In this document: positions 39,229 to 53,469 of the stretch, piece after piece | Numbering within the stretch: the first letter of the stretch is position 1 | Layout of the letters: each line of letters begins with the position of its first letter | DNA from: Mantamonas sphyraenae STR306 | Taxonomy: Eukaryota; Protista; CRuMs | Reading direction: 5' to 3' | DNA length: 64,000 nt | Assembly: GCA_026936335.1 (NCBI GenBank) | Contig: JAPMXV010000057.1 | Location: 1-64,000 of the forward strand | The notes under the pieces: model-generated | Seen by the model: the letters and a program-made list of their open reading frames with translations, nothing else | What the model was told of the DNA's origin: nothing | Database searches by the model: none | Made by a program: the position numbers and the translations under genes

Positions 39229-42037
39229 ATGTCTTCCACAGAGACTGTGGACACGGGTACGCCCGTCTCAGACGCACCTGAGCAAGCGGAGGAAGAGGGC
39301 CCATCGCAGAGCAGCAACGAGGCTGAGGAGAAGCCCCAGGAGGGCCAGAGTGGCGATGGAGACGAGGAGCAACAGGGAAAGAAGAAGAAGCGGCGACGCA
39401 AGAAGAGGAAGCCCAAGAGCGACGGGGACGCAGAGGGAGAGGATGGCACCGAAGGCGACGCAGACAACGAGGGAAAGAAGAAGAAGAAGCGCAAGAAGCG
39501 CAAGAAGCGCAAGCGCAAAAAGAAGCAGGATCAGCGGGCCTCTTTGGTGCCCATCCAGGCTCTTGGCGACGATGAGGATGCCAGCACGCCGTTTGAGGAA
39601 GTGCTTGCTCTCGAAGCAATGATCGAGAAGTATGCTCATCTGCAAGAGGAGAGCAAAGAACCCGTAGGTTGCCCGTTATCGCGTGAGGGCGCTCCATGGA
39701 ATCGAGGGCCCCCTTTTCTCCCAAAGCTGACCCGTTCCCACTCGTACACAATTGCTGGCACGTGGTTCACAGAGCGACGCGCTGGAAGAGCTGTTGGAGC
39801 GACGAGAGGAAGATTTGGATGTGCTGGAAGAGGCCGTGGAAGAGTTTCTGACGGCCTATACGCTGAACAGCGTGACGGCCCGCAATCTGTACAAGACGGG
39901 CGTGGAACTGGCCGAGAGTGTACAGGAGGCACTTGCGCCTCCGGGAGACATCTACGTACGCCTGCAGCTAATCTCTGTGGCAGTACGTGCATACCACATG
40001 GTGGGTCGATGCATGCTTTTGCTGGCCGTCAATCACGACCGTGACTCAAAAGAGGACGAACAGGCGTGCAGCGAATACCTGCGCGACAGCGAAATCGCCT
40101 TTCGCTGCGCTTCGCTCTTTGTCGATCTGCTGTTTGAACTGGATCTGGAGGCGATGGACGACGAGCTGCGGGAAGAGCTGGAAGGCACGTACGCAGACAC
40201 GCTGTTGGACAATCTCTCCGTGCTGTGTCGTCTGGCTTGCGTCAAGCTCAACCTGGGCGAGTATGTGGAAGCCAACCAGCTGTTCCGCGATGCCATGCAG
40301 TCGTCACACCAGCTCTACGCCACCGAGACCTTCCTTGACGCCGACCAGCGCAACACGCTCAAACTGGGCGAGGTCACGGTGACGTTGGAGTGGGCAGAGG
40401 CTCAACTCCGATGGGCTCTGGCCCAACAAGAGGAGTTGCGCATGCTGCAGGCCATCGTGGGCGATCGACAGGGAGGACGCAACGAGTTTGACGACAGCAT
40501 CGACAATCTGGGCAAAAGCGTCGCTCAGCTCTTCTTCCTGGCTCGCAAAAAGTACCAAAACTTGCTCACCGGCATCAGCGAGCTCACACACAACACATCC
40601 GTCCACTACATGCTGGCCACAGTGCATCTGCTCCACGCAGACGCCATTGTCGAAGGCCTGTGCAAACCCGAAAAGGCCGCAAACAACGGCGGCGGCAGCA
40701 GCAGCAGCAGCAGCAGCACCGCCAGCCCCAAACCCTCCCGCGATGGCAAGGACTCACGCTCGCTTTTGTTGCGGCCGTACTCGCCTTCGTCTCTGGATGA
40801 CGACGACGACGACGACGACGACGAGCGACCCAGCAGGACAACCTCACGCGGGAGCGGCTTCCTGCGTAGCATTTCGCTGGGCGGACGCTCGTCACCCAAA
40901 CCCACGCGCACATCGACTCAGGGCGGAGCACGCAGTCCTCTGCGCAGCTCATCGCGCTCGTCATCCAGCGCCTCGGGCCTGGATGACGACGAGGCAAAGT
41001 TTGATCCGTCCATGCTCAACGAAACAGACGTTGCCCGGCGTGCAAACCTGCTGGTGGCCTTGAATCTGGTACGCAAGGGTGCTGACAGGCTGGAGCAGGG
41101 TATAGGCCAGTACAACCTCGCAGGCGACGAGCTGTCCATGCTGCTTGGCAAACTCAAGTTGCTCGCCGCACAAATCTGCCATGAAATCACTCAGCTCGAG
41201 GTCAAAGCCCTCGAAGAGTACCGGTATGACTTTGAGACGCGTGTTCTGTGTGTGGCGTCGCAGGAGGAGACCTTTATCTGCGAGGCCTGCCAGGTGCTGC
41301 TGCCCCTCATGAAGGATCGCGTGGAGGTGGACCCTGCCATCAACCGGGTTCTCGACGCCCTTTCCAGCCTCATCAGCCTCAGTGTCAACATGCCCCCCGG
41401 ATACGCACGTGCCTTTGGCAAGCTGCAGAAGCGCGGTGGTCTGCGCAAAAACTGGCGCGAGCGCTACTTTGTGGCCACCAATGAGCTCATCACCTACCAC
41501 GACTCGGAAAAGGCCGCACGGGCCTTCCTCGAATCCCGTGGCCAATTGTTCAACAGCAGTCTGGGACAGATTGTGCTCACCGATGTGGCAGAAATCCTCA
41601 GCAACAGCACCTACTGCAAGAACAAGAACATCCAGCCCGACTCACTGGGCATCGACGCAAAGCAAACCTCCCGTGCCTTTGAAGTCATCACGGGCAAGGG
41701 GCGTGACTACCACTTTATTGCCTCGTCCGAGCAGAAGCGCATGGAGTGGATCGAACACCTCATCCGCCTCATCAGCTTCCGCCGCACCATCAACGAGACC
41801 TACGCCTTTCTCGAGGTCATAGGTGTCACCCTGCCAGCTTCCATCAACCACGAGCTCCACCTGTGCTCCACCATCACCTGCCCCAACCTTGTTCAGAAGG
41901 ACAGGACCGTTCACTCCTGCCGTCGCTGCCAACAAGACTTCTGCCCGACTTGCCTACTCGCCAAGGTCGATCTTGAGACATACGGTTTTGTGCGTCCGCA
42001 GACAGTGTGCGTGCGTTGCGAGTTGCTCCTCAAGTGA
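39229..42037 (+). CDS. Helical-repeat + PH + degenerate FYVE-like domain protein; join(39229..39663,39773..42037)
   Basis: GKLQKRGGLRKNWRERYFV...RMEWI (PH) and HSCRRCQQDFCPTC...VCVRC (FYVE-like). Confidence 0.8.
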
Positions 42038-42048
42038 ATGGAAACCAG
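42035..42048 (+). repeat. Left copy of 14-bp direct repeat TGAATGGAAACCAG (putative target-site duplication)
   Basis: Identical to 50191-50204; begins with the host gene's TGA stop. Confidence 0.9.
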
Positions 42049-42119
42049 CGCGCTGTCACACACACAACGCTGGCGTATTGTGGCGTTCAGCGCGCTGTGG
42101 TCAGCAACGCAAAACAAAA

Positions 42120-43139
42120 ATGACCGTCAAAACGAATGCAACGGGTGGGTCATACATCCACGGCAAAGCCTTTTCGGCGGACAAACGAGAATGCATTCTC
42201 TTTCACTACCAATCCAGCTTGCGTCCTTCGTGCAGAGGCACAGCGGAGGCTCTCGGTGTGTCTCCTTCCGTCGTGTCCAAGATTGTACGTCAACACCGAG
42301 CCATGGGCCATGTACGCCCTCTTGTGGCCCAACCACCGTCCAGGCGTCTCCTGGATGCCAATGACGACCAGTTCATTGCTGAACAGGTGGCCGGTGATCC
42401 GCGACTGTACCTGGACGAGTTGCAAGTAGCCGTTGCTCTTCATCGCAACAAGGTGGTATCTCTGTCCACAATTCGCCGTTCTTGTGCGCGCATGGGACTG
42501 ACTCGCAAGAAGGTGAGTGCTATCGCCAAGCAACGGTTCAGGGAATCCACCGTGGCGCGCACACGCGAGTTTACTCGAGCAATGAGGATTCGCGGTGTGT
42601 TCCGAGCGCCGAACGTGGTCTTCTTGGACGAAACTGCAGTGAACAACAGAGTGTGCTACAGGAGATATGGTCGTGCGAAACGTGGGCAACCAGCGGTCGT
42701 TGTGGAGAACCATCCCAAGCAAAAGCGCATCAGCGTGCTGGCGGCCATCAGCACCGGTGGGCGCTCGCCACTGGTAGCGTACACAATGCGAGAGGGGTCA
42801 TACAACCGGCAGCTGTTTATGGAGTTCCTGGAGCAAGACCTCTTGCCCCGCATGCGAGATTGCCGCCAAACAGTTCTGGTCATGGACAACTGCTCCATCC
42901 ACAAAGGCGATGCTGTACGCCAGCTGTGCACCTGGTATGGGGTGGATGTCGAGTTTCTCCCGCCTTGCACACCTACGCTCAACCCCATCGAGCTCATGTT
43001 TAGCAAGTTCAAGGCGGTCCTCCGCAGGGAATTTCATCGAGTGGACATTTGCACTTTCGCGGCGATTTGTACTGCATTGGGGCATGTTACGGCTGCTGAT
43101 GTGAGGAACTGGGTCCATCACTGCGGGTACCGCATGTAG
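42120..43139 (+). CDS. IS630/Tc1-mariner DD34E transposase (339 aa, intact)
   Basis: HTH AEALGVSPSVVSKIV, second HTH LYLDEL..VSLSTIRR..GLTRKK, FLDET, VMDNCSIHK, FLPPCTPTLNPIE; 34 residues separate the second D from the E. Confidence 0.95.
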   Translation: MTVKTNATGGSYIHGKAFSADKRECILFHYQSSLRPSCRGTAEALGVSPSVVSKIVRQHRAMGHVRPLVAQPPSRRLLDANDDQFIAEQVAGDPRLYLDELQVAVALHRNKVVSLSTIRRSCARMGLTRKKVSAIAKQRFRESTVARTREFTRAMRIRGVFRAPNVVFLDETAVNNRVCYRRYGRAKRGQPAVVVENHPKQKRISVLAAISTGGRSPLVAYTMREGSYNRQLFMEFLEQDLLPRMRDCRQTVLVMDNCSIHKGDAVRQLCTWYGVDVEFLPPCTPTLNPIELMFSKFKAVLRREFHRVDICTFAAICTALGHVTAADVRNWVHHCGYRM

Positions 43140-44121
43140 GATCGTGGAGCGTAGCCATTCAGGGCGCACGCTGGTGCTGAAAACCCCGTACTCCCGATGC
43201 CATCTTTGTGTCGGGGGGGCTCAAAGAGAAGCAGGGAGGGCTAAGTGGGGCACCTACAAGGCGTGGATAGTGCCCACCTCCCCTGGCAGCAGTCTCCTCA
43301 GTCAGGAGCGACGGCCTTGCAACTGCGCTTTGCGAACATACCATGCGCCCCGTGCATAAACAATCCATGGAACGCCTGCATACAGTCATCATGCCACATG
43401 GTCCTCTGGTTTTGGCTCCAACACCCGTGGGAGGAGCACCGCCGTGGTCGTCTACGCCGTCGAGATGAACGCCTCGTGCACCAGCACAATGCATTACACA
43501 TGCATCTCCTCCTTTGGACTTTGGAGAACCATGTCCCAACATGTATGTACGCAAACACCATGAGACACAGCGTGTGTGAAGCCACATACACCGAGTTCCG
43601 TCATCTTTCGCGTAGCCTGGGTCTTTGTTGTCATCCAGGACGGGAAGGCACCACAGCAGGTCATAATTCCTGCTGTAGTCCCTGTGTGTTGTCGTGCAGC
43701 CTGTCCACTTGACTCTGTTTGGCTCCTGTGGACGTGTGCCACCTGCGGGTCACGCGACGGCGACGCCATCACATGTGCCTGCCGGTTGGCGGGCAATAGG
43801 GTGTCGTACACGGAGCCACGATGGCCACGATGAAACAGGAACAGCACATCACACCCAGGTGGATGATTCCAACACAAAGCGGGCGAACATGCAACCACCG
43901 CAATGCGAGAAGTACTGATGTCAAGCATGCCGACGCTCCGGTGCCAAAACCCCAGCTGCAACACGATGGAAGTGCTCATGGTGTGCTCGATAACGTCACA
44001 ACCACCAGCCCGTCCTCACGTGTCCCTGGTGTGCCCTACGTGTGTTGCATCGCACGAGTCGATTTCATTGTATCAACCCCGTACACAAGTGCCAGCAAAC
44101 CTGTGCATGCCCGAAATTGAG

Positions 44122-47100
44122 ATGGAAGGGTACTCCAATGTCAACGGTGTCAACAACACGGGGGTGGCGTGTTGGGTGTCTTCCTTCACCACAGCAGTTC
44201 GCTGTTCCCCGATTCTGCGTTCCCTCATGTGCGACTACTTGCTCACCTGGATGGAGGGTATGATTACAGCGGAGGGTACTATTAACTGGGGTACTGGCGT
44301 TGTGTCGGAGGGGGAAGGCGAGGCGGTGAAAGGTAACGCACAACATACACACGCTGCGACGGAGTTGTGCTGACGCCCCGCGTGCTGACGCCCTCCCAAA
44401 ACACACACCCTCCCAAACGCACACCCTCCCACAGACCCCAGAGTCGTCAACCCCCGCCCTCCTGCGCCAGACCTGGTGCGTGGCCATGTTCTGTGACGAT
44501 GAAATGTACGCAGGAGCATGCAACGACGTGTTTCTGGCAGCCACGGTGCTGGCGGGCGATAGCAAACGATGGGGAGACCCTTCCGACCTGTACCTCCATT
44601 TGACGCTCGCGTTCGACTCCAGTTTCCCCGTGTGCCTGCGGGATGTCCGACTGACAGCGGGTCCTGCAGAGTTTGCAGGTCTGGCGGCCGAGCTTGCGCA
44701 CGATGAGCGTGAAAGTGACCGTACGCGACCGCAGAGACGGCAACGACGACGACAACGTGCGCAGGAGCATGAGGAGCAAGAGGAGCAGCACGAGCAGCAC
44801 GAGCAAGTGCCGTTCGGGGTTCTCAGTACCAATGGCGAACACTTTACAGCCTGGCTTCCGTTGGACAACGGCGAGTTTCGCGTGTACAACGACCTCTCCC
44901 GGGCACTCACGGACGAGAAGTGGGCAGGTACAGCACATCTCGGGGTGCAGGTCATGGTACCGAAAACTCAACCACCTTTCGATTGGGCCTCGCCACCCCC
45001 CACCGGGAAGGTGATTCTCCGAAGCAAGCGTTCGGTGTTTCGCTGTCCACAAAGGATCAAGGCGCCAATGGCAATGGAGCACAACGAGAAGTCGACCAGC
45101 GCTGGTACCCGGCTGTACGCTGCGCACGCTACCCGAGCTCGTGCGACAACGCCAGCGCCTCTGGGCAGGCCACCCTCGACTCGTGTGCAGATTGCTGGGT
45201 CAACCGCATCTGTGCGTGGGCTTCGTTTCAATCGTGTGCCCGCCACGCAGACATCGGCAGCAGGGCAGCTGACACAGCTTCCGACTTCCGCCGGCGACAA
45301 GACGCCAGTGACCGCAAAGTGTCTGGACGTGTTGAACGACAACTGGCAACCCCCACCTTTGGCTGACTCTGCTGTCAACGAGGGCGTGGAGGGTGGTGTG
45401 CAGCGTGGCGTCGCTGGGTCGGGGGGAACCCGCCTTGCCGCAGTGTACGTTGGCCTCAGCAGCCTCGCCGCTCGCTACTTGCACCTCTCCGACCATACCA
45501 TCACGCATCCCGCCACGTTCACCTCTGCCTGGCAATGGGTCACCACGATCCTCGACACTGTGTTGCCCAGATTGAGCAAGCTGTTCTCGACTCGCACGGT
45601 TGTGGTTGTGGACGACGTCGTGTCCACAGCCGCACTGTTTGCAGGTCGAGCCACGCCAGCCGAGCTGCAACGCTTCTACCAGCAACTGAGTGCAGCTGTG
45701 TCCCAGGACACCTTCTCCAACGCCAAGCAGCGAGCGTTCGCCGCCCGTGCCACGGTCACCACCCTGGCGCCAGTGATGCGCGACTACCTTGCTGCCCATC
45801 AAGTGGCAACGATGTCACTGGACGAGTTCGTCACAAACCAGGCCGTCAGAAATAAGGCCGTCAGAAAGCAGGCCGCCAAAAACCAGGTCAAGGCCGAGGA
45901 CGATGTCGTTCTGTGCCACCGCGAGGGGCGTCTCATGGCTGGCCTCGCACTCCATGGGTCAGCTCCGGGGCTGCGGGTTGTCAACATCTTCAACGCCCAT
46001 GTGGTGGACACGAAGGAAGTGCACGCCAAAGCGACGTCATGGAAACTGCAAACTTGGGCCAAGGGTGCCAAGAAGAAGCCCAAAAAGGGGAAGACGACAA
46101 AGACCAAATCGCGAGGGAAATCATCGATCAAGAGTGACGACGAAAAGAAGGAAGAAGAGACTGAAGCGCTGAGGCAGCAGCTGCTCACGGTGGGTCTGGA
46201 GGAGACCGAACGTGACCATGGTCCGATGTCGGCCGTCGCCTTGGCGCAAGCAGTCTGCCAGCGGCTTGGAGGAGTGCATGGTCTCGATCATCAACGCGCG
46301 CAGACCGTGATGGAGTCGTTCAGTCGACTGTGTACGCGGGCGAAGGCGCAACCGCGCTCAGTGGAGGAGTTGGCACAAGCATTGGGCTTGACTGAGGTCA
46401 ACATCACCTACAAACACAAGCCAGAGCTGAAGAACACCGATGACACCCGTATGCATATGGAGTACAAGCTCGGGCGTGGCCACAGTGCACGGGAAGGGAC
46501 GCTGCACGTGCAGGAGATGCCATTCCATCTCGCACAGGGCATTCACAAGGATGTTGCGAAGGCCATGGTGGGCAAGGAGGACGCCACGGAGCCGGACGAG
46601 GAGGACTGTGCAGTGCCCTACCTGCTGACGGCAACTGAAGCCGAAATCGCGCAGATTGTGGAGGAGATTCCTGCTGGCTTTGATGCATCTGTCTTCAAAA
46701 AGAACAAGGAGGAGTCACTCAGTTCCCGTGGGGCCGTTGAAAGGTGGACATCTGTTCCACGTGTGATCACAGCACGGCACGAGAAACAACTTGCAGTGCT
46801 CCTGCGAAAAGATGGCCAGGTGCTACGCCCTCCTGCGACCCCATCATCAGCGACCCGTGCGGACCTATTCGAGGTGGCGCTCCAGACAGGGGCAACAACA
46901 GAGGGCGAGACATTGACGCCGCTCAAGGATGCTTTTTATGACAAGGATGACGTAAAGGGAAGCCAGCGGGGGCGACCCGTGTGGATCCCGCACGGGTTTG
47001 ATTTCACCACGCTGCTGCCTTCGGCCACGGCGATCAGGGAGCACGATTTTGTTGAGTACCAGAGCGATCTCAAGAAGAATCTGAAGCTGGAGGCGAACGT

Positions 47101-47584
47101 GCGTGGGCTTGGAAAGAGCGAGGCTGACGTGCTTGGAGCGTTGGCGGACTGTATGCTCGTGCAAACAGCCTTGCTTCGAGCATGGTTCGTCGACCAGGTG
47201 ATTCCAGAGGTGAAAAAGGACCCAACTGCATGGTTCACTGCGCCCCATGGACGTCAGCAATCGGTGGATGGCAGCGACGAGCAGGAGGAGGCGGAGCTGG
47301 ATGAGTCGGAGCTGGACGAGGCGGAGCTGCCAACAGAGGATCAGACGATGATTGACGGGATGGTGGTCGACGGGATGGTGGAAGATCACAGCCGCGTGAA
47401 GCCCTTCTACCTGCTCGAAGCGTTCACGGCCTGCGCAAAGTGGCGACGCACAACCTCAAGGTACTCAAGGAGAACGTGGACACCCCAGAGGAGCTCAAGT
47501 CTGTACGATTTACCAGGAACGGGATACAGAAGGCGGGCGATGGTCAACATGGTTTCGACTTTTCCTTCATGGTCACGCGTCTGA
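44122..47584 (+). CDS. Element ORF with an N-terminal USP/C19-like cysteine protease; probable N-terminal part of the Fanzor; join(44122..44332,44442..47584)
   Basis: Cys box GVNNTGVACWVSS.....SPILR in exon 1. A 109-nt GT-AG intron with two CTGAC branch-like motifs joins in frame. His box GVLSTNGEHFTAW.....FRVYND. Confidence 0.7.
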
Positions 47585-50085
47585 AGGTGGATCTTTCGGA
47601 GGCGCCCGTGTCGAGAATGGCCAATGACATCGCTCGTGCCTTCAATGGCAGCCTGCAGTCGGCCATCTCCTTGTGTGCCTACCCGATGATCGTGGCGCTG
47701 ATGAGGAACGGGGCGCCCAGCGAGCTGCCCATGTCCGCCATCGTGGCCAGCGTCGCCGCGCTCATGCGTACAAGCTATGCAAAGACCAAGAAGGCGTTCC
47801 AAACCCACCAGGTGTCGACAAAGGACACACGTGACTTTGTGTTCTCTCAGCCCATTCACAAGGCCACAAAGGCTGCTGCCGCGGCTGCTGCTCACTCTTC
47901 AGTGGAGGTCCAGGGGCCCTCCATGGATGTGCAGGAGTCCTCCATGGATGTGCAGGAGTCCTCCGTGGATGCGCTGCCCTCTGTGGATGTGGAGTCATCC
48001 ATGGATGTGCAGGAGTCCTCCGTGGATGTGCTGCCCTCTGTGGATGTGGAGTCATCCATGGATGTGCAGGAGTCCTCCGTGAATGTGCTGCCCTCTGTGG
48101 ATGTGGAGTCATCCATGGATGTGCAGGAGTCCTCCGTGGATGCGCAGCTCTCTGTGGATGCGCAGCGCTCACAAGGTGTATCTCCATGGGACCCGTACGA
48201 GGAAGTGTGCACAAGTCTCTCGGATCAACTCGGCAAGCACGTGCGTGGCAAACGGGACGCGTTGTCTGTGCTGTTGGATGTGATGCTCAAGCCCGACCTG
48301 AAGACCAATCTCAAAAGCACACAAGCAAAGCGCGCCATTGCATCGACAGCAGCATCATTGGACTGTGTTGACGCGATGTTTCCCGGTCCGGTTGACATTG
48401 GCGGCCAGTTCGTCTTCGGCGCGTACTCCGTCAAGACGTACGCGTTTAAGATCTTTGTGAACACCATGGAAGCAAGGTGGAAAGCCCATGGAAAGCCGAA
48501 CGGGAATGCCAACCCAGATGACCCCCCAGACGCCAACCCAGACGACCCCCAAGACGCAAACCCGAACGCCAAGTCGGACGCCAACCCGGGTTGGTGGAAT
48601 GCACTGAAAGAACGCGAGTGGGTTTTGACGGATGAGGCCATCCCGAGTCTCCCTAAATGGCTCAAGCAGGCAGTGTATCGGTGTCGGTATGCTCGTCGCA
48701 TGCCAGAAAACAACAGTGACGAGGATCTGCCCAACAAGCACTGGGCAGGGGAACGGCCGCTGCGAACAGTTCCCGTGAAGTCAATACTCATGCTCACGCG
48801 CGGCGTTGGCACGAAAAACGCAAGGTGCCTGCTGAAGAACGTCAGCGCCAGCAGCATGCGCATGCTCTCTGGTGGAATCGCCGCTCAGGGGAAGTACAGG
48901 CGAGCCTTGGTGTTACAGCCACCAAGAGTTCACACTCTCCTGCCTTCACCGGCGAGCCTCGCAACATTGATCAGGCCAAGGATGGCTCATCTCCTGCCCC
49001 TTCTGCTGGACCCCAAGAAGGACGCGCTGATTGCCCTTGCCGTACTGAAGCCCACGGGCATGCCAGACACGTGGACGACCGAGATCCAGAAGATTGCTCC
49101 CGGTTTCCCGAAGTACCCCGTTCCGAAGCGTGGCTTGGTCGAGCACGTCAAGGCCTTTGCCAAGAATGGATACGCAGTCCTTGAGCATGCACGCAAGGTG
49201 CTGTGGATCAGCATTGACCCTGGTCGTGGACGCGACTGGGTCGAGGCGATCTTTGTGCGGGACGGCCAGCTGTATGTGGCCACGCTACCCTTGGACAGCC
49301 ACGAGGTGCAGGCACACAAGGCAGGGCAGGACCGAGTGCTGGCGTCGTACACGGACTTCAAGAAGGAGTACAAGCAACGTGTCTTCGGAAAAGATTTGCA
49401 CAAGGATGCGAAGCACATGCGTGCGCAGTACGCAACGTTTCGCAAACGAAGGATGGCAGGCGTGCGTGAGATGATCTCAGTGATCCACAGGTTCCGTGCG
49501 CATCTGGACCTGGAGCAGGTGATTGTGCTGCAGCCGACAAAGACATTTGGCGGACGCGGGAAATCGCAGGAGATGCGGGAGATGCTGGCCAACCACTTTG
49601 TGGTCATTGCAGCAGACGAGAGGTATACATCGCAGCAGTGCTTCTGTGGCAGCCCTGTCGACAACTTGGACGACTTTGGCGCAGGGAAGTTTGGGCGATG
49701 GCGGACGTGCAGCAGCCACTGCCTGTCGGACATCGACTCCAACATGTTTGACGCCACCAAGCAGCTCAAACGCTTTGCACAACGGCACGCATGCAAAGAG
49801 ATGGAGGGCGAGGGTGAGCACAACTTGCACCAGGCAGTTCAGAGAGACCGAGGCTCTGCACACTGCATCTTCTGGCGGCAGATGCTCTTCTTTGTCACAG
49901 GCGTCTGGATGGAGAAGCCAACAAAGAAAATCAAGGTGCAACGCAAGGCAGCAGACAAGGCAGGCGAGAAAAGCAAGAAGAGAAGAGATGAGGAAGTGGG
50001 GGAAGAAGAGGATTCGGGTGGGTCACAACCACAACAGCATGCTCCCAAGCGACAAAGGGTACAGCGACCAAGGATAGGCAAATGA
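47440..50085 (+). CDS. Fanzor (eukaryotic TnpB-like) RNA-guided RuvC nuclease; frame open from 47356, first ATG 47569
   Basis: RuvC-I WISIDPG (D at 49216), shifted RuvC-II ADERYTSQ (E at 49618), Zn finger CFC...CSSHC, RuvC-III QRDRGSAHCI (D at 49846), basic NLS-like tail. Confidence 0.9.
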   Translation: MATHNLKVLKENVDTPEELKSVRFTRNGIQKAGDGQHGFDFSFMVTRLKVDLSEAPVSRMANDIARAFNGSLQSAISLCAYPMIVALMRNGAPSELPMSAIVASVAALMRTSYAKTKKAFQTHQVSTKDTRDFVFSQPIHKATKAAAAAAAHSSVEVQGPSMDVQESSMDVQESSVDALPSVDVESSMDVQESSVDVLPSVDVESSMDVQESSVNVLPSVDVESSMDVQESSVDAQLSVDAQRSQGVSPWDPYEEVCTSLSDQLGKHVRGKRDALSVLLDVMLKPDLKTNLKSTQAKRAIASTAASLDCVDAMFPGPVDIGGQFVFGAYSVKTYAFKIFVNTMEARWKAHGKPNGNANPDDPPDANPDDPQDANPNAKSDANPGWWNALKEREWVLTDEAIPSLPKWLKQAVYRCRYARRMPENNSDEDLPNKHWAGERPLRTVPVKSILMLTRGVGTKNARCLLKNVSASSMRMLSGGIAAQGKYRRALVLQPPRVHTLLPSPASLATLIRPRMAHLLPLLLDPKKDALIALAVLKPTGMPDTWTTEIQKIAPGFPKYPVPKRGLVEHVKAFAKNGYAVLEHARKVLWISIDPGRGRDWVEAIFVRDGQLYVATLPLDSHEVQAHKAGQDRVLASYTDFKKEYKQRVFGKDLHKDAKHMRAQYATFRKRRMAGVREMISVIHRFRAHLDLEQVIVLQPTKTFGGRGKSQEMREMLANHFVVIAADERYTSQQCFCGSPVDNLDDFGAGKFGRWRTCSSHCLSDIDSNMFDATKQLKRFAQRHACKEMEGEGEHNLHQAVQRDRGSAHCIFWRQMLFFVTGVWMEKPTKKIKVQRKAADKAGEKSKKRRDEEVGEEEDSGGSQPQQHAPKRQRVQRPRIGK
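47920..48165 (+). repeat. In-frame coding minisatellite (21-bp and 57-bp units, SMDVQESSVDxLPSVDVES)
   Basis: 57-bp units start at 47941, 47998, 48055 and 48112 (partial), preceded by a 21-bp copy. Confidence 0.95.
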
Positions 50086-50210
50086 TCGGCCTACAGATCC
50101 AAATCCACAGGCTTACCCATACTACCTTGTCGCACCATGTGGTGCATCGACTAGCCGAAGGCCATGTGCACAGCCATGTGGCCAATACAATGAATGGAAA
50201 CCAGAAGAAT
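50086..50210 (+). ncRNA. Candidate Fanzor omegaRNA (scaffold ~50086-50190 plus guide read from the flank)
   Basis: Lies between the Fanzor stop and the element end. Stems TCGGC(C)TA/TAGCCGA, GTCGCACC-atgt-GGTG(cat)CGAC and GGCCA/TGGCC; three CCATGTG copies. Confidence 0.55.
50191..50204 (+). repeat. Right copy of 14-bp direct repeat TGAATGGAAACCAG
   Basis: Identical to 42035-42048. Confidence 0.9.
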
Positions 50211-50225
50211 TCAAGAATTCAGAAT

Positions 50226-50357
50226 TCATTGCGACCCAGATTGAGTCACGCTCTCCTCTTGCGTCGTTGCGGGAGGTGCCTGCGGAGGCCTCGGTGCACC
50301 CCACCCACCATACCCTGGATGCAGAAACTGCTGTGGATGATGATGCATCTGTGGTGT

Positions 50358-50391
<34 letters not shown>

Positions 50392-53378
50392 GGTGGTGGT
50401 GGCCCAGGACTTGCCCATGGGGAATGGGGCGCAGGCGACGCTGGCATCCACATCATCACTGGCTGCATCCCAGGCATACCCATACCCATGCCGTGCATAC
50501 CCATGGCCATCCCGGGGTAGGCGTGTGCAGGCATTGGCGCCTGCATGGGAGTCTGCGGCTGCGATGGCGGCTTGGAAGTTTCCCCGCCGTCCTCCGGTGC
50601 CTGCTTCTTCTTTTTGGCCAGCGTCAGCAGTTCCCTCAACTGTGCCTGCATCTGCTTCACCTGTCCCTTCAACTCTGCGTCCTCAATCTCTTCAATCTCC
50701 TCCTCCAGCTCCGTCCACAAGGCTTTCCGTTGTGGTCCTGGCCGGCTGCTCCTCTGCTCCTCCTCCCACTCTTCTGCTTCCCTGTTTCCTTCCCCATCCT
50801 CCTCTTCGTCCTCCCTTTGCTCGGGTAATTTGAACCCTCCGCCTGTACGTGGCACACTGCCACTGCGCGCTCTTTGTGGGTCTGGACGTCCTCGCCGCTG
50901 CCCCTGCCCATCATCCTGTGGAGGCATGGGTCGACTGCTGCCATTGCTACCTGCACTTGCTGGACGCCAGGGCTTTGTATGCGTGGGTTGCGACGCAGAA
51001 CCGCTGCGCCGCCTGCGTCGTGGCGCCGTCTTGCGTGTCGCCCACGTTCCCTGTTGCTGATCCCACTCCGACTCCTCCACCACGTACGCGTCATCCAAGT
51101 CCAGGTCGTCCTGGTGAAGCTGCTGCAGGTGCTGGTGGTGGCGGTCATACACATCCACCTCGTCCTCAAAACGCACCACACGGCGTGACGAATTGCCCAT
51201 CCCGTTGCCTCCCCTGCTGCCAGTGCTGTCGTTCCAGCTTCCGACATAGCTACCACCGACCCCCATTTCCTCTTCTTCCATGCGCATCTGTCTGCGCCGT
51301 GCCAGTTCCCGCTTCTGTGCTCGCAGCTGTCGCACGGCCATCCGCTTCTCCCGTTCCCGCTCCTCCATCATCAGTTCGTGCTCCATCAGCTGCTTGGCCT
51401 CGCGGTACTCCTCCATCCAACGCATGTACTCCCGTTCCTGGTGGGCCATTTCCATTTGCCGTTGTTGCATGGGTCGTGCCCAGCTGAACGACGGCACAAA
51501 CAGTTGCGACGGCTCATCAATCACCTTTGGAGCCGCCTGTTTGCGTTCCAAAACCCCCGTGCGACCCATGTTCAGCGAATATTCCATGTGTTCCGTGTTG
51601 TTGTTCTGTGTCAGAAGCAGGTACTGCAGCAACTTCTGTGGATCCTGCAGCATCTTGTGTGCCATGCTCAGTGCCTGATCGTTCACTCCTGTCAGTGCCT
51701 TGACCGCCTGTGCGTTGTCATTGCCTGACAGTGATACCGTGTCACCTGCTGTTGCTGTTGCACTCCCGCGTGTGCCTCCTTCCTCCCCGCTGGTCGTCGT
51801 CGCTCGCTTCTTGCGCTTCTTGCGCTTCGGTCGCTTTGGCCGTGCGCTCCCCGGTTCGCTTCCACTCGCCGACGCCGTCCCTTGTGCCCTCAACATCCTT
51901 CCGTGTCGTCCGCCTGCCCCTGTGCCACTCCCTTCCGCCGATGATGCCGATGCAGGGCGTCCGTGGCTGCTGCTGCGTGTTCGACTGCTGCTCATCTGCA
52001 CTTCCGGCATTTTCACCTGCACCTGCACTTCTTTCCACGTCTCCAACCGCCCATGTCCTCCCTTTACCATGCGTCCATTCCTGGATGGCGATGCCGTGCT
52101 CATCGGTGTCACTGTGCTGCTGCTTGCCGCCGAACGCGGACGCTTGCCCTTCTTCTTCTTCCCCTTCCCGCTCCCCACGCTGTTCGTACTGCTCGTCACA
52201 TCCACTGTCCCCTCCGCAGTTGACGCCGTCTCCTTTCCCGACGTCTGTTTCCGTGCACCTTTCTTCCCTCCCTTTGCCACCCCTCGCTGCTGGCCCTGTT
52301 GGCTGAAGAATCCAGGCACCGGCCAATTCACCTCTTCCTCCTCCTCCTCCTCCTCCTCTTCCTCCTCCTCCTCCGCATTCTCCTCCGCCTCATCTTCCGG
52401 TGCTCCTTCATCGTTGTCTTCTCCTTCGTTCTGGCCCCCCTGTGCATCTTCCTGCACCTCCATGGCGTCGTCCTGGCCTATCCTTGTGGCCATCGAGTCC
52501 CCAGCCTGCTTCTCCTGCTTCTCCTCCTCCTTGGCTGGTGTCGTCGCTGCACTCTCCGTCTCACTCCCTGGCAATTGGTTCACTTCCATCGTTTGCATGT
52601 CCCTTCGCTCCTCAATCGACAGCTGCGGTGGCTTGTTGACCCGCCAATCCCCACTCGACCGCCTTCGCCCGTCCGTCGCCCCTTCCCCCTTCGCCCCTAG
52701 CCTGTCCGTGTCTGTTGTGCTCTCTGTCGACCCTCTCCCTTTGCTCGATGTGTCTTCTTCCTCCATGTCCGCCTGTGTCGCCCTCTTTGCAGGCGCCTGT
52801 GTCGTGGAACCGCCTGCCGCCTGGGCTCCGGCCGTTACCCCGGCCGCCGAACCTTGCTTATCCGCGTCCTTTGCACCCAGACCCACTGCAGAGGCCATAG
52901 GCGACGCTGTGGCGATGGGTGCTGGCACTTCCACCTCGCTGTCCGATTCATCGTGTGTTCCCGTGGCCCTTGCTTGCCCTGCGTTCGCCTCAGTCTTCAG
53001 CTCGGGCGGCGTCCTCGACCCGGTTTTTGGCTGCAGGTGCTCCATGCTGCTGCTCACTGCCTCACCACTGCTTCGTACGCCTGCCACCCCACGTGCACTC
53101 TCCTTGCCCTGTCCTGTGACCCCGTCCTCTTCCGGTCCGCTTGTCTGGCCCGCCGTCTTCAGCTCCACGCTGTCGTCCAGGCCGTCCAGAATGTCCACAT
53201 CCAAGTCCAAATCGTTCAGGAACTCGTCCATATCAAAGTTTGCCAGGTCGCCGTCCAAGTCCAGATCATCAAAGTTAAAGTCATCGTCGTCGTCATCGTC
53301 GTCGTCGTCGTCGTCATCCTCATCCTCGTCAAACACTGTTTGCAGCTCATCAAACTGCGCCTCCGTCAATCCACTCAT
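50226..53378 (-). CDS. Large low-complexity/disordered hypothetical protein with coiled-coil segments
   Basis: ORF of more than 1000 codons with acidic, basic and Q/P-rich tracts; first ATG at 53378. Confidence 0.7.
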
Positions 53379-53469
53379 CGATTCGCCTGCCTCCGTCAAC
53401 GCATTTCCTTCATTCCACCCCCCAACTCACACACACCATACACACACACACACACACACACCCTCAGCC

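Follow-up and report, generated by a model that had tools for sequence, protein, structure and literature searches.

A plausible footprint of Fanzor cleavage and abortive homing at one copy of a young IS630/Tc1-Fanzor family in Mantamonas sphyraenae

What Fanzors do for the transposons that carry them is an open question, and one that a locus in the deep-branching protist Mantamonas sphyraenae addresses. In the window (the whole stretch of DNA analysed, 64,000 nucleotides of contig JAPMXV010000057.1), a transposase gene and a Fanzor gene lie between two exact copies of a 14-bp sequence (42035-42048 and 50191-50204) with no other copy in the 25-Mb assembly. The initial annotation, which had reported this repeat correctly, had read it as the target duplication of an element that lacks TIRs, does not insert by mariner chemistry and may couple each insertion to cleavage by its Fanzor. 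We found that this is not a new RNA-guided transposon. It belongs to a young IS630/Tc1-Fanzor family whose TIRs are minimal and whose duplication is relaxed to T-N, and it is the one copy that plausibly records cleavage by the Fanzor in vivo, followed by abortive homing.

The window begins at a chromosome end, with a telomere repeat of the TTAGGG type at positions 1-176. The element lies between a PH-domain gene (39752-42037, + strand; PH E 2e-9), whose TGA stop codon forms the first 3 nt of the left 14-mer, and a convergent host gene (50226-53399, - strand) with its stop codon at 50226-50228. The transposase gene (42120-43139, + strand) encodes 339 aa with a PAX-like HTH and a DD34E domain. 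Its catalytic residues (D170, D256 and E291) and its matches to Pfam DDE_3 (E 1.4e-25) and NCBIfam IS630 (122 bits, cut-off 100), both above cut-off, bear out the DD34E assignment made earlier, and its closest relatives, 30-40% identical, are ITm proteins from fungi and metagenomes. The element is of the IS630/Tc1 DD34E type, and its second gene encodes a giant Fanzor.

The Fanzor gene follows on the + strand as two exons, 43903-44332 (start codon uncertain) and 44435-50085, separated by a GT-AG intron of 102 nt (44333-44434). The spliced joint is present in run X4, so that this run looks like RNA; contig depths there, a rough guide, are 2-5 for the Fanzor transcript and about 100 for the host gene. 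Exon 1 contains a USP-like Cys box, and exon 2 a USP-like His box near its start. Both boxes are visible as motifs only, with no Pfam match when the N-terminus was searched exon by exon and Atlas UCH rows reaching only 0.86-0.88 for this part. Two 1-nt frame breaks, an extra C near 44451 and a missing C at 47429, both in C runs, are unique to the window copy and absent from the read contigs, while the Fanzor frames of eight other copies are unbroken at 1746-2058 aa; the breaks are probably errors of the long-read assembly. A programmed frameshift or a pair of genes at 47430 was rejected, as the change is a single-base deletion unique to the window copy. At least three further ITm families are present, with transposases about 46% identical and longer left ends, and in one copy (C59) a downstream frame with a USP-like His box is probably another giant Fanzor.

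The C-terminus is of Fanzor type, in agreement with the earlier reading of a Fanzor between the repeats. Exon 2 ends with a RuvC domain and a zinc finger that fit the Fanzor motif D-X(125,275)-[TS][TS]-XX-zinc finger-X(5,50)-RD with spacings of 136 and 40, the cysteine pairs CxC and CxxxC being a variant of the Fanzor (Bao-Jurka) motif. The RuvC triad spans 49216-49848 (+ strand), with D at 49216, E at 49618 just upstream of the zinc finger and the D of RD at 49846. This RuvC-II glutamate stands 7 positions before the first zinc-finger cysteine, and a rearranged glutamate about six residues before the zinc finger is a Fanzor feature (PMC13565253). Language-model features (Atlas) placed the C-terminus at 0.96 to TNB/DUF8286 clusters, the Pfam TNB match was below cut-off (E 0.023), and the RuvC region had no sequence relatives at E 0.001 among 1.8 billion representatives. 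The structure model (pLDDT 34) is too poor to test the fold; its best Foldseek match was to RuvC at E 0.012, with Cas12 rows. The context, a DDE element and a large protein, would fit a Fanzor1; no alignable relatives were retrieved.

Downstream of the Fanzor frame, a predicted omegaRNA scaffold (50086-50192, + strand) takes in a 9-bp hairpin (50160-50183), the right TIR and the TG duplication, and is nearly invariant in 10 copies. The structured non-coding tail described in the initial annotation is present, with a fold only weakly above shuffles (z -0.9 to -1.8) and no match in an Rfam search. By analogy with known Fanzor1 biology, the guide would correspond to the sequence that directly follows each insertion on its 3' side. 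Just upstream of this predicted RNA, the final 142 bp of the frame of the Fanzor (49933-50074 in the window) are repeated in tandem two to three times in C40, C68, C71, C52 and C15.

A genome search with both element ends recovered ten two-ended copies (C14, C17, C40, C41, C44, C52, C57, C58, C68 and C71, where C57 is the window copy), besides truncated ones. Their common termini, TTGT...ACAA, correspond to 42078 and 50190 in the window, so the start at 42049 assumed earlier gives way to a true left end at 42078. A TIR is present: it is 4 bp long (TTGT at 42078-42081, ACAA at 50187-50190, + strand), far shorter than the TIRs typical of IS630/Tc1/mariner elements, and is found at the ends of 8 of the 10 copies with the window copy as a ninth; C71, counted as two-ended though its left end lacks 11 nt, stands apart. 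Immediately outside the termini is a 2-bp duplication, the same on both sides: TA in six copies, TG in one or two and TT in one. Six copies are flanked by TG-TA on the left and TA on the right, C14 and probably C71 by TG-TG and TG, and C68 by TG-TT and TT; the truncated copy C29 has AG-TA at its left side. The second base of the duplication thus covaries between left and right, as predicted for a 2-bp target duplication, and a parse with 1 bp and an element ending in ACAAT is indistinguishable from it by sequence. Two sister Fanzor families in the same genome, with 8 and 5 copies, likewise end on the right in ACAA followed by T-N; across 24 right flanks of the three families, the next bases are TG (11), TA (10), TT (2) and TC (1). 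The predicted terminal stem of the sister families pairs the TIR (in one family also the first duplication base), as reported for Fanzor1 omegaRNAs.

The normal route of the family is therefore mariner-like integration at TG-TN with a 2-bp duplication, presumably by cut-and-paste. TA duplications and TIRs in other copies, which the initial annotation had named as evidence against its own proposal, came to light once the ends were searched for; the notions of a non-mariner chemistry, of a 14-bp duplication as the family's insertion signature and of every insertion being coupled to Fanzor cleavage fall with them. There was also no insertion at a fixed distance from a pre-existing guide match, the ten unrelated sites sharing only TG-TN. 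The duplication is likely the 3' half of the TAM, by analogy with Fanzor1 elements (PMC13565253, PMC10711439). Copies of the main subfamily are 96-100% identical and hence young, which together with an empty allele described below implies recent movement. Transposase depth is 7-8.4x flank depth for 9 assembled copies and 2-3x for C68-type sequence (depth table); most copies may be homozygous, or further copies may be unassembled, and homozygosity, if true, would fit homing. Nesting of separate transposase and Fanzor elements was rejected: in eight full copies the two genes share a single pair of ends, and C52 and C71 keep both ends with the transposase internally deleted.

The window copy departs from this pattern at its left side. 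Its target motif is AG-TG (42033-42036, + strand), in place of the upstream CTCAAG proposed before; this predicted TAM compares with a family consensus of TG-TA and with TG-TG, TG-TT and AG-TA in other copies. The right 14-mer (+ strand) comprises the TG duplication and the first 12 nt of the predicted guide, and the left 14-mer (+ strand) the same TG and target positions +1..+12; we read the latter as a retained TAM-proximal broken end. Between it and the true left end are 29 nt of filler (42049-42077) found in no other copy, and the window copy alone among the ten two-ended copies has a 14-bp duplication and filler. The longest piece of filler, 11 nt, copies positions 42088-42098 of the element's own left end and includes a CAG overlap with the 14-mer (42046-42048); an equally long match was found in 8 of 12763 random 50-nt stretches. 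This source coincides with a perfect 10-bp palindrome (42088-42097) that is a recurrent breakpoint: the C71 copy starts inside it, the C60 remnant stops at it and the filler begins with it. GTA, the majority flank of other copies, precedes the left end. The window copy is also a mosaic, of the main subfamily, then of C68 type at about 43270-45200, then of the main subfamily again. Two candidate origins for the junction were rejected, namely a donor flank carried from elsewhere (no exact source for the filler in the assembly) and an old mariner in a palindromic TGTACA target with ends TTGTGGC...GCCAA (that sequence is lacking in the empty allele).

The M. sphyraenae genome is diploid and was assembled with FALCON from PacBio RSII reads (PMC10492846), and we compared read contigs of the same study (runs X1, X2 and X4) with window positions 41600-47550. 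In X4 an empty allele is present, in which position 42048 is followed by one 8-bp unit and then by the convergent gene; the tail of an X2 contig after 42048 has the same length. The initial annotation had reconstructed an empty site with some 32 bp between the convergent stop codons. Such a site does exist in the read contigs, with a gap of 17 bp instead, since the right flank includes 15 bp that only the filled allele has. These 15 bp are extra tandem units: at 50205-50227 the filled allele has three units (8+8+7 bp) against one in the empty allele. Counted from after TG, the extra units are +13..+20 (or +14..+21) and +14..+20, and so start at +13, directly past the end of the duplication at +12. 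An X1 contig ends 31 letters past 42048, where 31 are expected with the three-unit flank and 16 without the extra units, so that short reads indirectly back the filled allele on its right side. Filled and empty alleles thus occur together at this single locus, and the filled one has marks at the predicted cut.

Fill-in of a staggered cut duplicates its overhang, and the extra units are candidate fill-in scars of two such cuts. Tandem duplications of this kind have been shown mainly for 3' overhangs (PMC8355091). The interpretation we lean towards, by a little, is that the window copy is a secondary product, in which the Fanzor repeatedly cut the empty allele and the element was copied in by abortive homing; whether the allele pair as a whole is a natural record of Fanzor homing, with repeated cuts at +13..+20/21 and copying of the element into the break, seems to us evenly balanced. 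Every cut-and-repair step here is inferred from sequence. An ordinary insertion at AG-TG would first have created a guide for this site. The Fanzor would then have cut the empty allele, on the sister after precise excision or on the homolog, in a staggered manner, with the top strand broken after about +12/13 and the bottom strand after +20/21. Fill-in and re-ligation, repeated twice, would have left a 7-bp and then an 8-bp tandem duplication with the target kept; since fill-in leaves the first 20 target bases intact, the site could be cut again. The next cut would have been repaired one-sidedly, the TAM-distal end copying the element in from its 3' side. The new strand would finally have been end-joined to the TAM-proximal end, through the 3-nt microhomology and with filler templated at the palindrome of the left end. 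That TAM-proximal end, being untrimmed, still had TG and 12 target bases and would thereby yield the 14-bp duplication. As this route needs an earlier ordinary insertion to supply the guide, it describes homing or restoration and not primary guided integration. The proposal that the left junction sits in the Fanzor cut region, with the duplicated bases equal to the guide, gains support for the window copy from the allele comparison; homing-type secondary repair is a likelier event here than primary guided integration.

Several features speak for such homing. The extra units, of a length rare at that place in background sequence (figures below), lie near published Fanzor1 cut positions, which are after 16-17 and 20-21 with 5' overhangs for SpuFz1 and after 14-17 for GtFz1 (PMC10432273). 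The junctions of Fanzor-carrying Helitrons, compared further on, are a precedent (PMC3627910). The unit order 8, 8, 7 is that expected from a 7-nt and then an 8-nt overhang, the filler is templated on local sequence, and the copies are subfamily mosaics, which fits copying with template switches. Against it, the top-strand position (+12/13) is 2-4 nt nearer the TAM than the published cuts, and AG-TG is off the family consensus, where SpuFz1 is intolerant of TAM changes (PMC10432273). An unscarred empty allele persists in the same culture, though Fanzor depth in X4 is very low. The GTA before the left end fits a TG-TA donor or chance and not a same-locus TG-TG donor; the element may have served as its template, or it may derive from an ectopic donor, which would agree with the mosaic make-up of the copy. 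The comparison also concerns one locus, with a test window picked after that locus had been seen. Tandem units of 7-9 bp start in that window at 0.4% of background positions, and units of 6-9 bp occur in it at 1.8%, or at 0.7% when nearby flanks are taken. Of the 23 other right flanks in the three families, only that of C14 has such a duplication (6 bp at +13), which is not significant, the chance of such a result being about 0.15 within the family and about 0.35 overall; C14 can also be parsed as a 6-bp duplication with a re-copied TG-TG.

The strongest competitor is an accident independent of the Fanzor, in which either a mariner strand transfer at AG-TG with the right end only or a random break next to a copy already in place was followed by polymerase-theta-like synthesis that duplicated 14 bp, added the filler and iterated the neighbouring 7-8 bp. 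We regard this as rather unlikely, if a serious candidate. Filler and iterated flank copies are generic end-joining products. Tandem duplications are known at staggered breaks (PMC8355091). AG-TG is the poorest match to the target consensus, so that a faulty integration would be plausible there; scars are not significantly enriched across the family, and broken end remnants stand elsewhere (C7 and C60). One-ended transfer, however, nicks at position 0, so a break at +12/+13 would go unexplained, and it leaves unaccounted for the confinement of the extra units to +13..+21, on the other side of the element.

We think it improbable that the left 14-bp extension and the filler are an assembly artefact, produced by a FALCON/Racon consensus that mixed reads of the empty allele, the filled allele and other copies. 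A diploid genome, a heterozygous site and noisy RSII reads (PMC10492846) would invite such mixing, and this copy has two homopolymer frame breaks that are absent from the read contigs. The left junction is also absent among the read contigs listed, none of which crosses the filler, and most other copies are flanked by GTA. Contigs, however, drop short links of low depth; long-read depth is about 100x, the filled right flank with its extra units is backed by the X1 contig end, and the filler, being copied in a structured way from local sequence, does not look like noise. That primary insertion is coupled to Fanzor cleavage as the element's regular route is very improbable, since despite the geometry of the window copy's junction, the 6-bp parse of C14 and a similar tentative proposal for Chlamydomonas Helitrons (Craig 2023; PMC10288648), plain 2-bp duplications at sites unrelated to each other flank at least 7 of the 9 remaining two-ended copies, a site has no guide before an insertion there, and the 14-mer is nowhere else in the assembly, leaving no ectopic copy to supply one.

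Much of this is already known from other systems. The mariner/Tc1-Fanzor1 elements PGv-1, PUl-1 and Spu-1 have the same order of an ITm DD34E transposase and then a Fanzor, with TIRs (PMC3627910, PMC10432273), and Chlamydomonas GEVE families belong to the same group (10.1101/2024.09.03.611062). Shared features are a 2-bp duplication that makes up the 3' half of an upstream motif of 4 nt (TG-TA in this family, CA-TA in SpuFz1) and a non-coding tail running through the right end. The present family differs in a TIR of only 4 bp, a duplication relaxed to T-N (TA, TG and TT, with TC also after the right end of a sister family), and a Fanzor of about 2000 aa whose gene contains an intron and whose N-terminus is USP-like. 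The junction anatomy itself is known from the Fanzor-carrying CRe-1/2/3 Helitrons of Chlamydomonas (Helitron2), which have intact 3' ends, 7-19-bp duplications by the target motif and extra 5' sequence, while their Fanzor-less relatives are without such junctions (PMC3627910); Craig tentatively attributed these junctions to Fanzor cleavage (PMC10288648). A precise 3' end, a duplication beginning at the motif, extra sequence after the 5' duplication and a link to a Fanzor are common to both. In CRe-1/2/3, however, this outcome is common, the elements are HUH-mobilised and one-ended rolling-circle transposition has been given as the explanation, whereas here it marks a single copy in a DDE family, an empty allele can be compared with it, and the predicted overhang coincides with extra tandem units. 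If our reading is true, the variable duplications seen in Helitrons with a Fanzor, so far unexplained, could have arisen by this route too.

Homing by TnpB and IscB of IS605 and IS607 elements likewise involves a guide from the 3' flank, a TAM in the 5' flank, an empty-site target and break repair (PMC13565253). That homing is experimental, in bacteria, with scarless excision and clean gene conversion, whereas here the process is inferred and the product imprecise. The same review lists homing for bacterial TnpB and IscB and names no Fanzor case; for Fanzors homing has been proposed only (PMC13565253, PMC10530073). In the literature surveyed, which covered few subscription journals, we found neither a paper showing a Fanzor cut with the element copied back into the empty site nor a report of such anatomy in a DDE element with an empty allele and extra units. 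What is plausibly new is this junction anatomy in a DDE element, together with an empty allele and units that would map a staggered cut. The scarred filled allele and the clean empty one give exact predictions of the target, of the AG-TG versus TG-TA motif and of the overhang at +13..+20/21, and the scar signature can be screened for in any genome with Fanzor elements. CRISPR-associated transposons also combine a transposase and a Cas12-related protein in one element. They differ from the element described here, in which no TnsC/TniQ-type adaptor was seen, the RuvC triad is intact and insertion sites are unrelated to any stored guide.

Some further observations concern other copies. The C14 copy lies directly downstream of the stop codon in a gene that probably encodes succinyl-CoA ligase. 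In run X4 the transcript of this host gene appears to continue into the left end of the element, and transposase mRNA could arise in this way. The copies C17:156470 and C41:146512 have at least 1.18 kb of left flank in common (99.9%), the beginning of a gene that probably encodes NAD synthetase, and different right flanks, a pattern that either an exchange between copies or a mis-assembly across the repeat could give. Isolated end remnants, possibly products of aborted copying or of excision, comprise about 50 and 20 bp of left end at C7 and C60, 15 bp of right end followed by T at C58:153625, and, at C33:104787, 28 bp from the right end of a sister family with TG after it. The truncated C29 copy (about 4517) is joined to a copy of telomere-adjacent sequence (870-1050 in the window), and a 50-bp piece inside the element (45370-45425) matches a multi-copy repeat.
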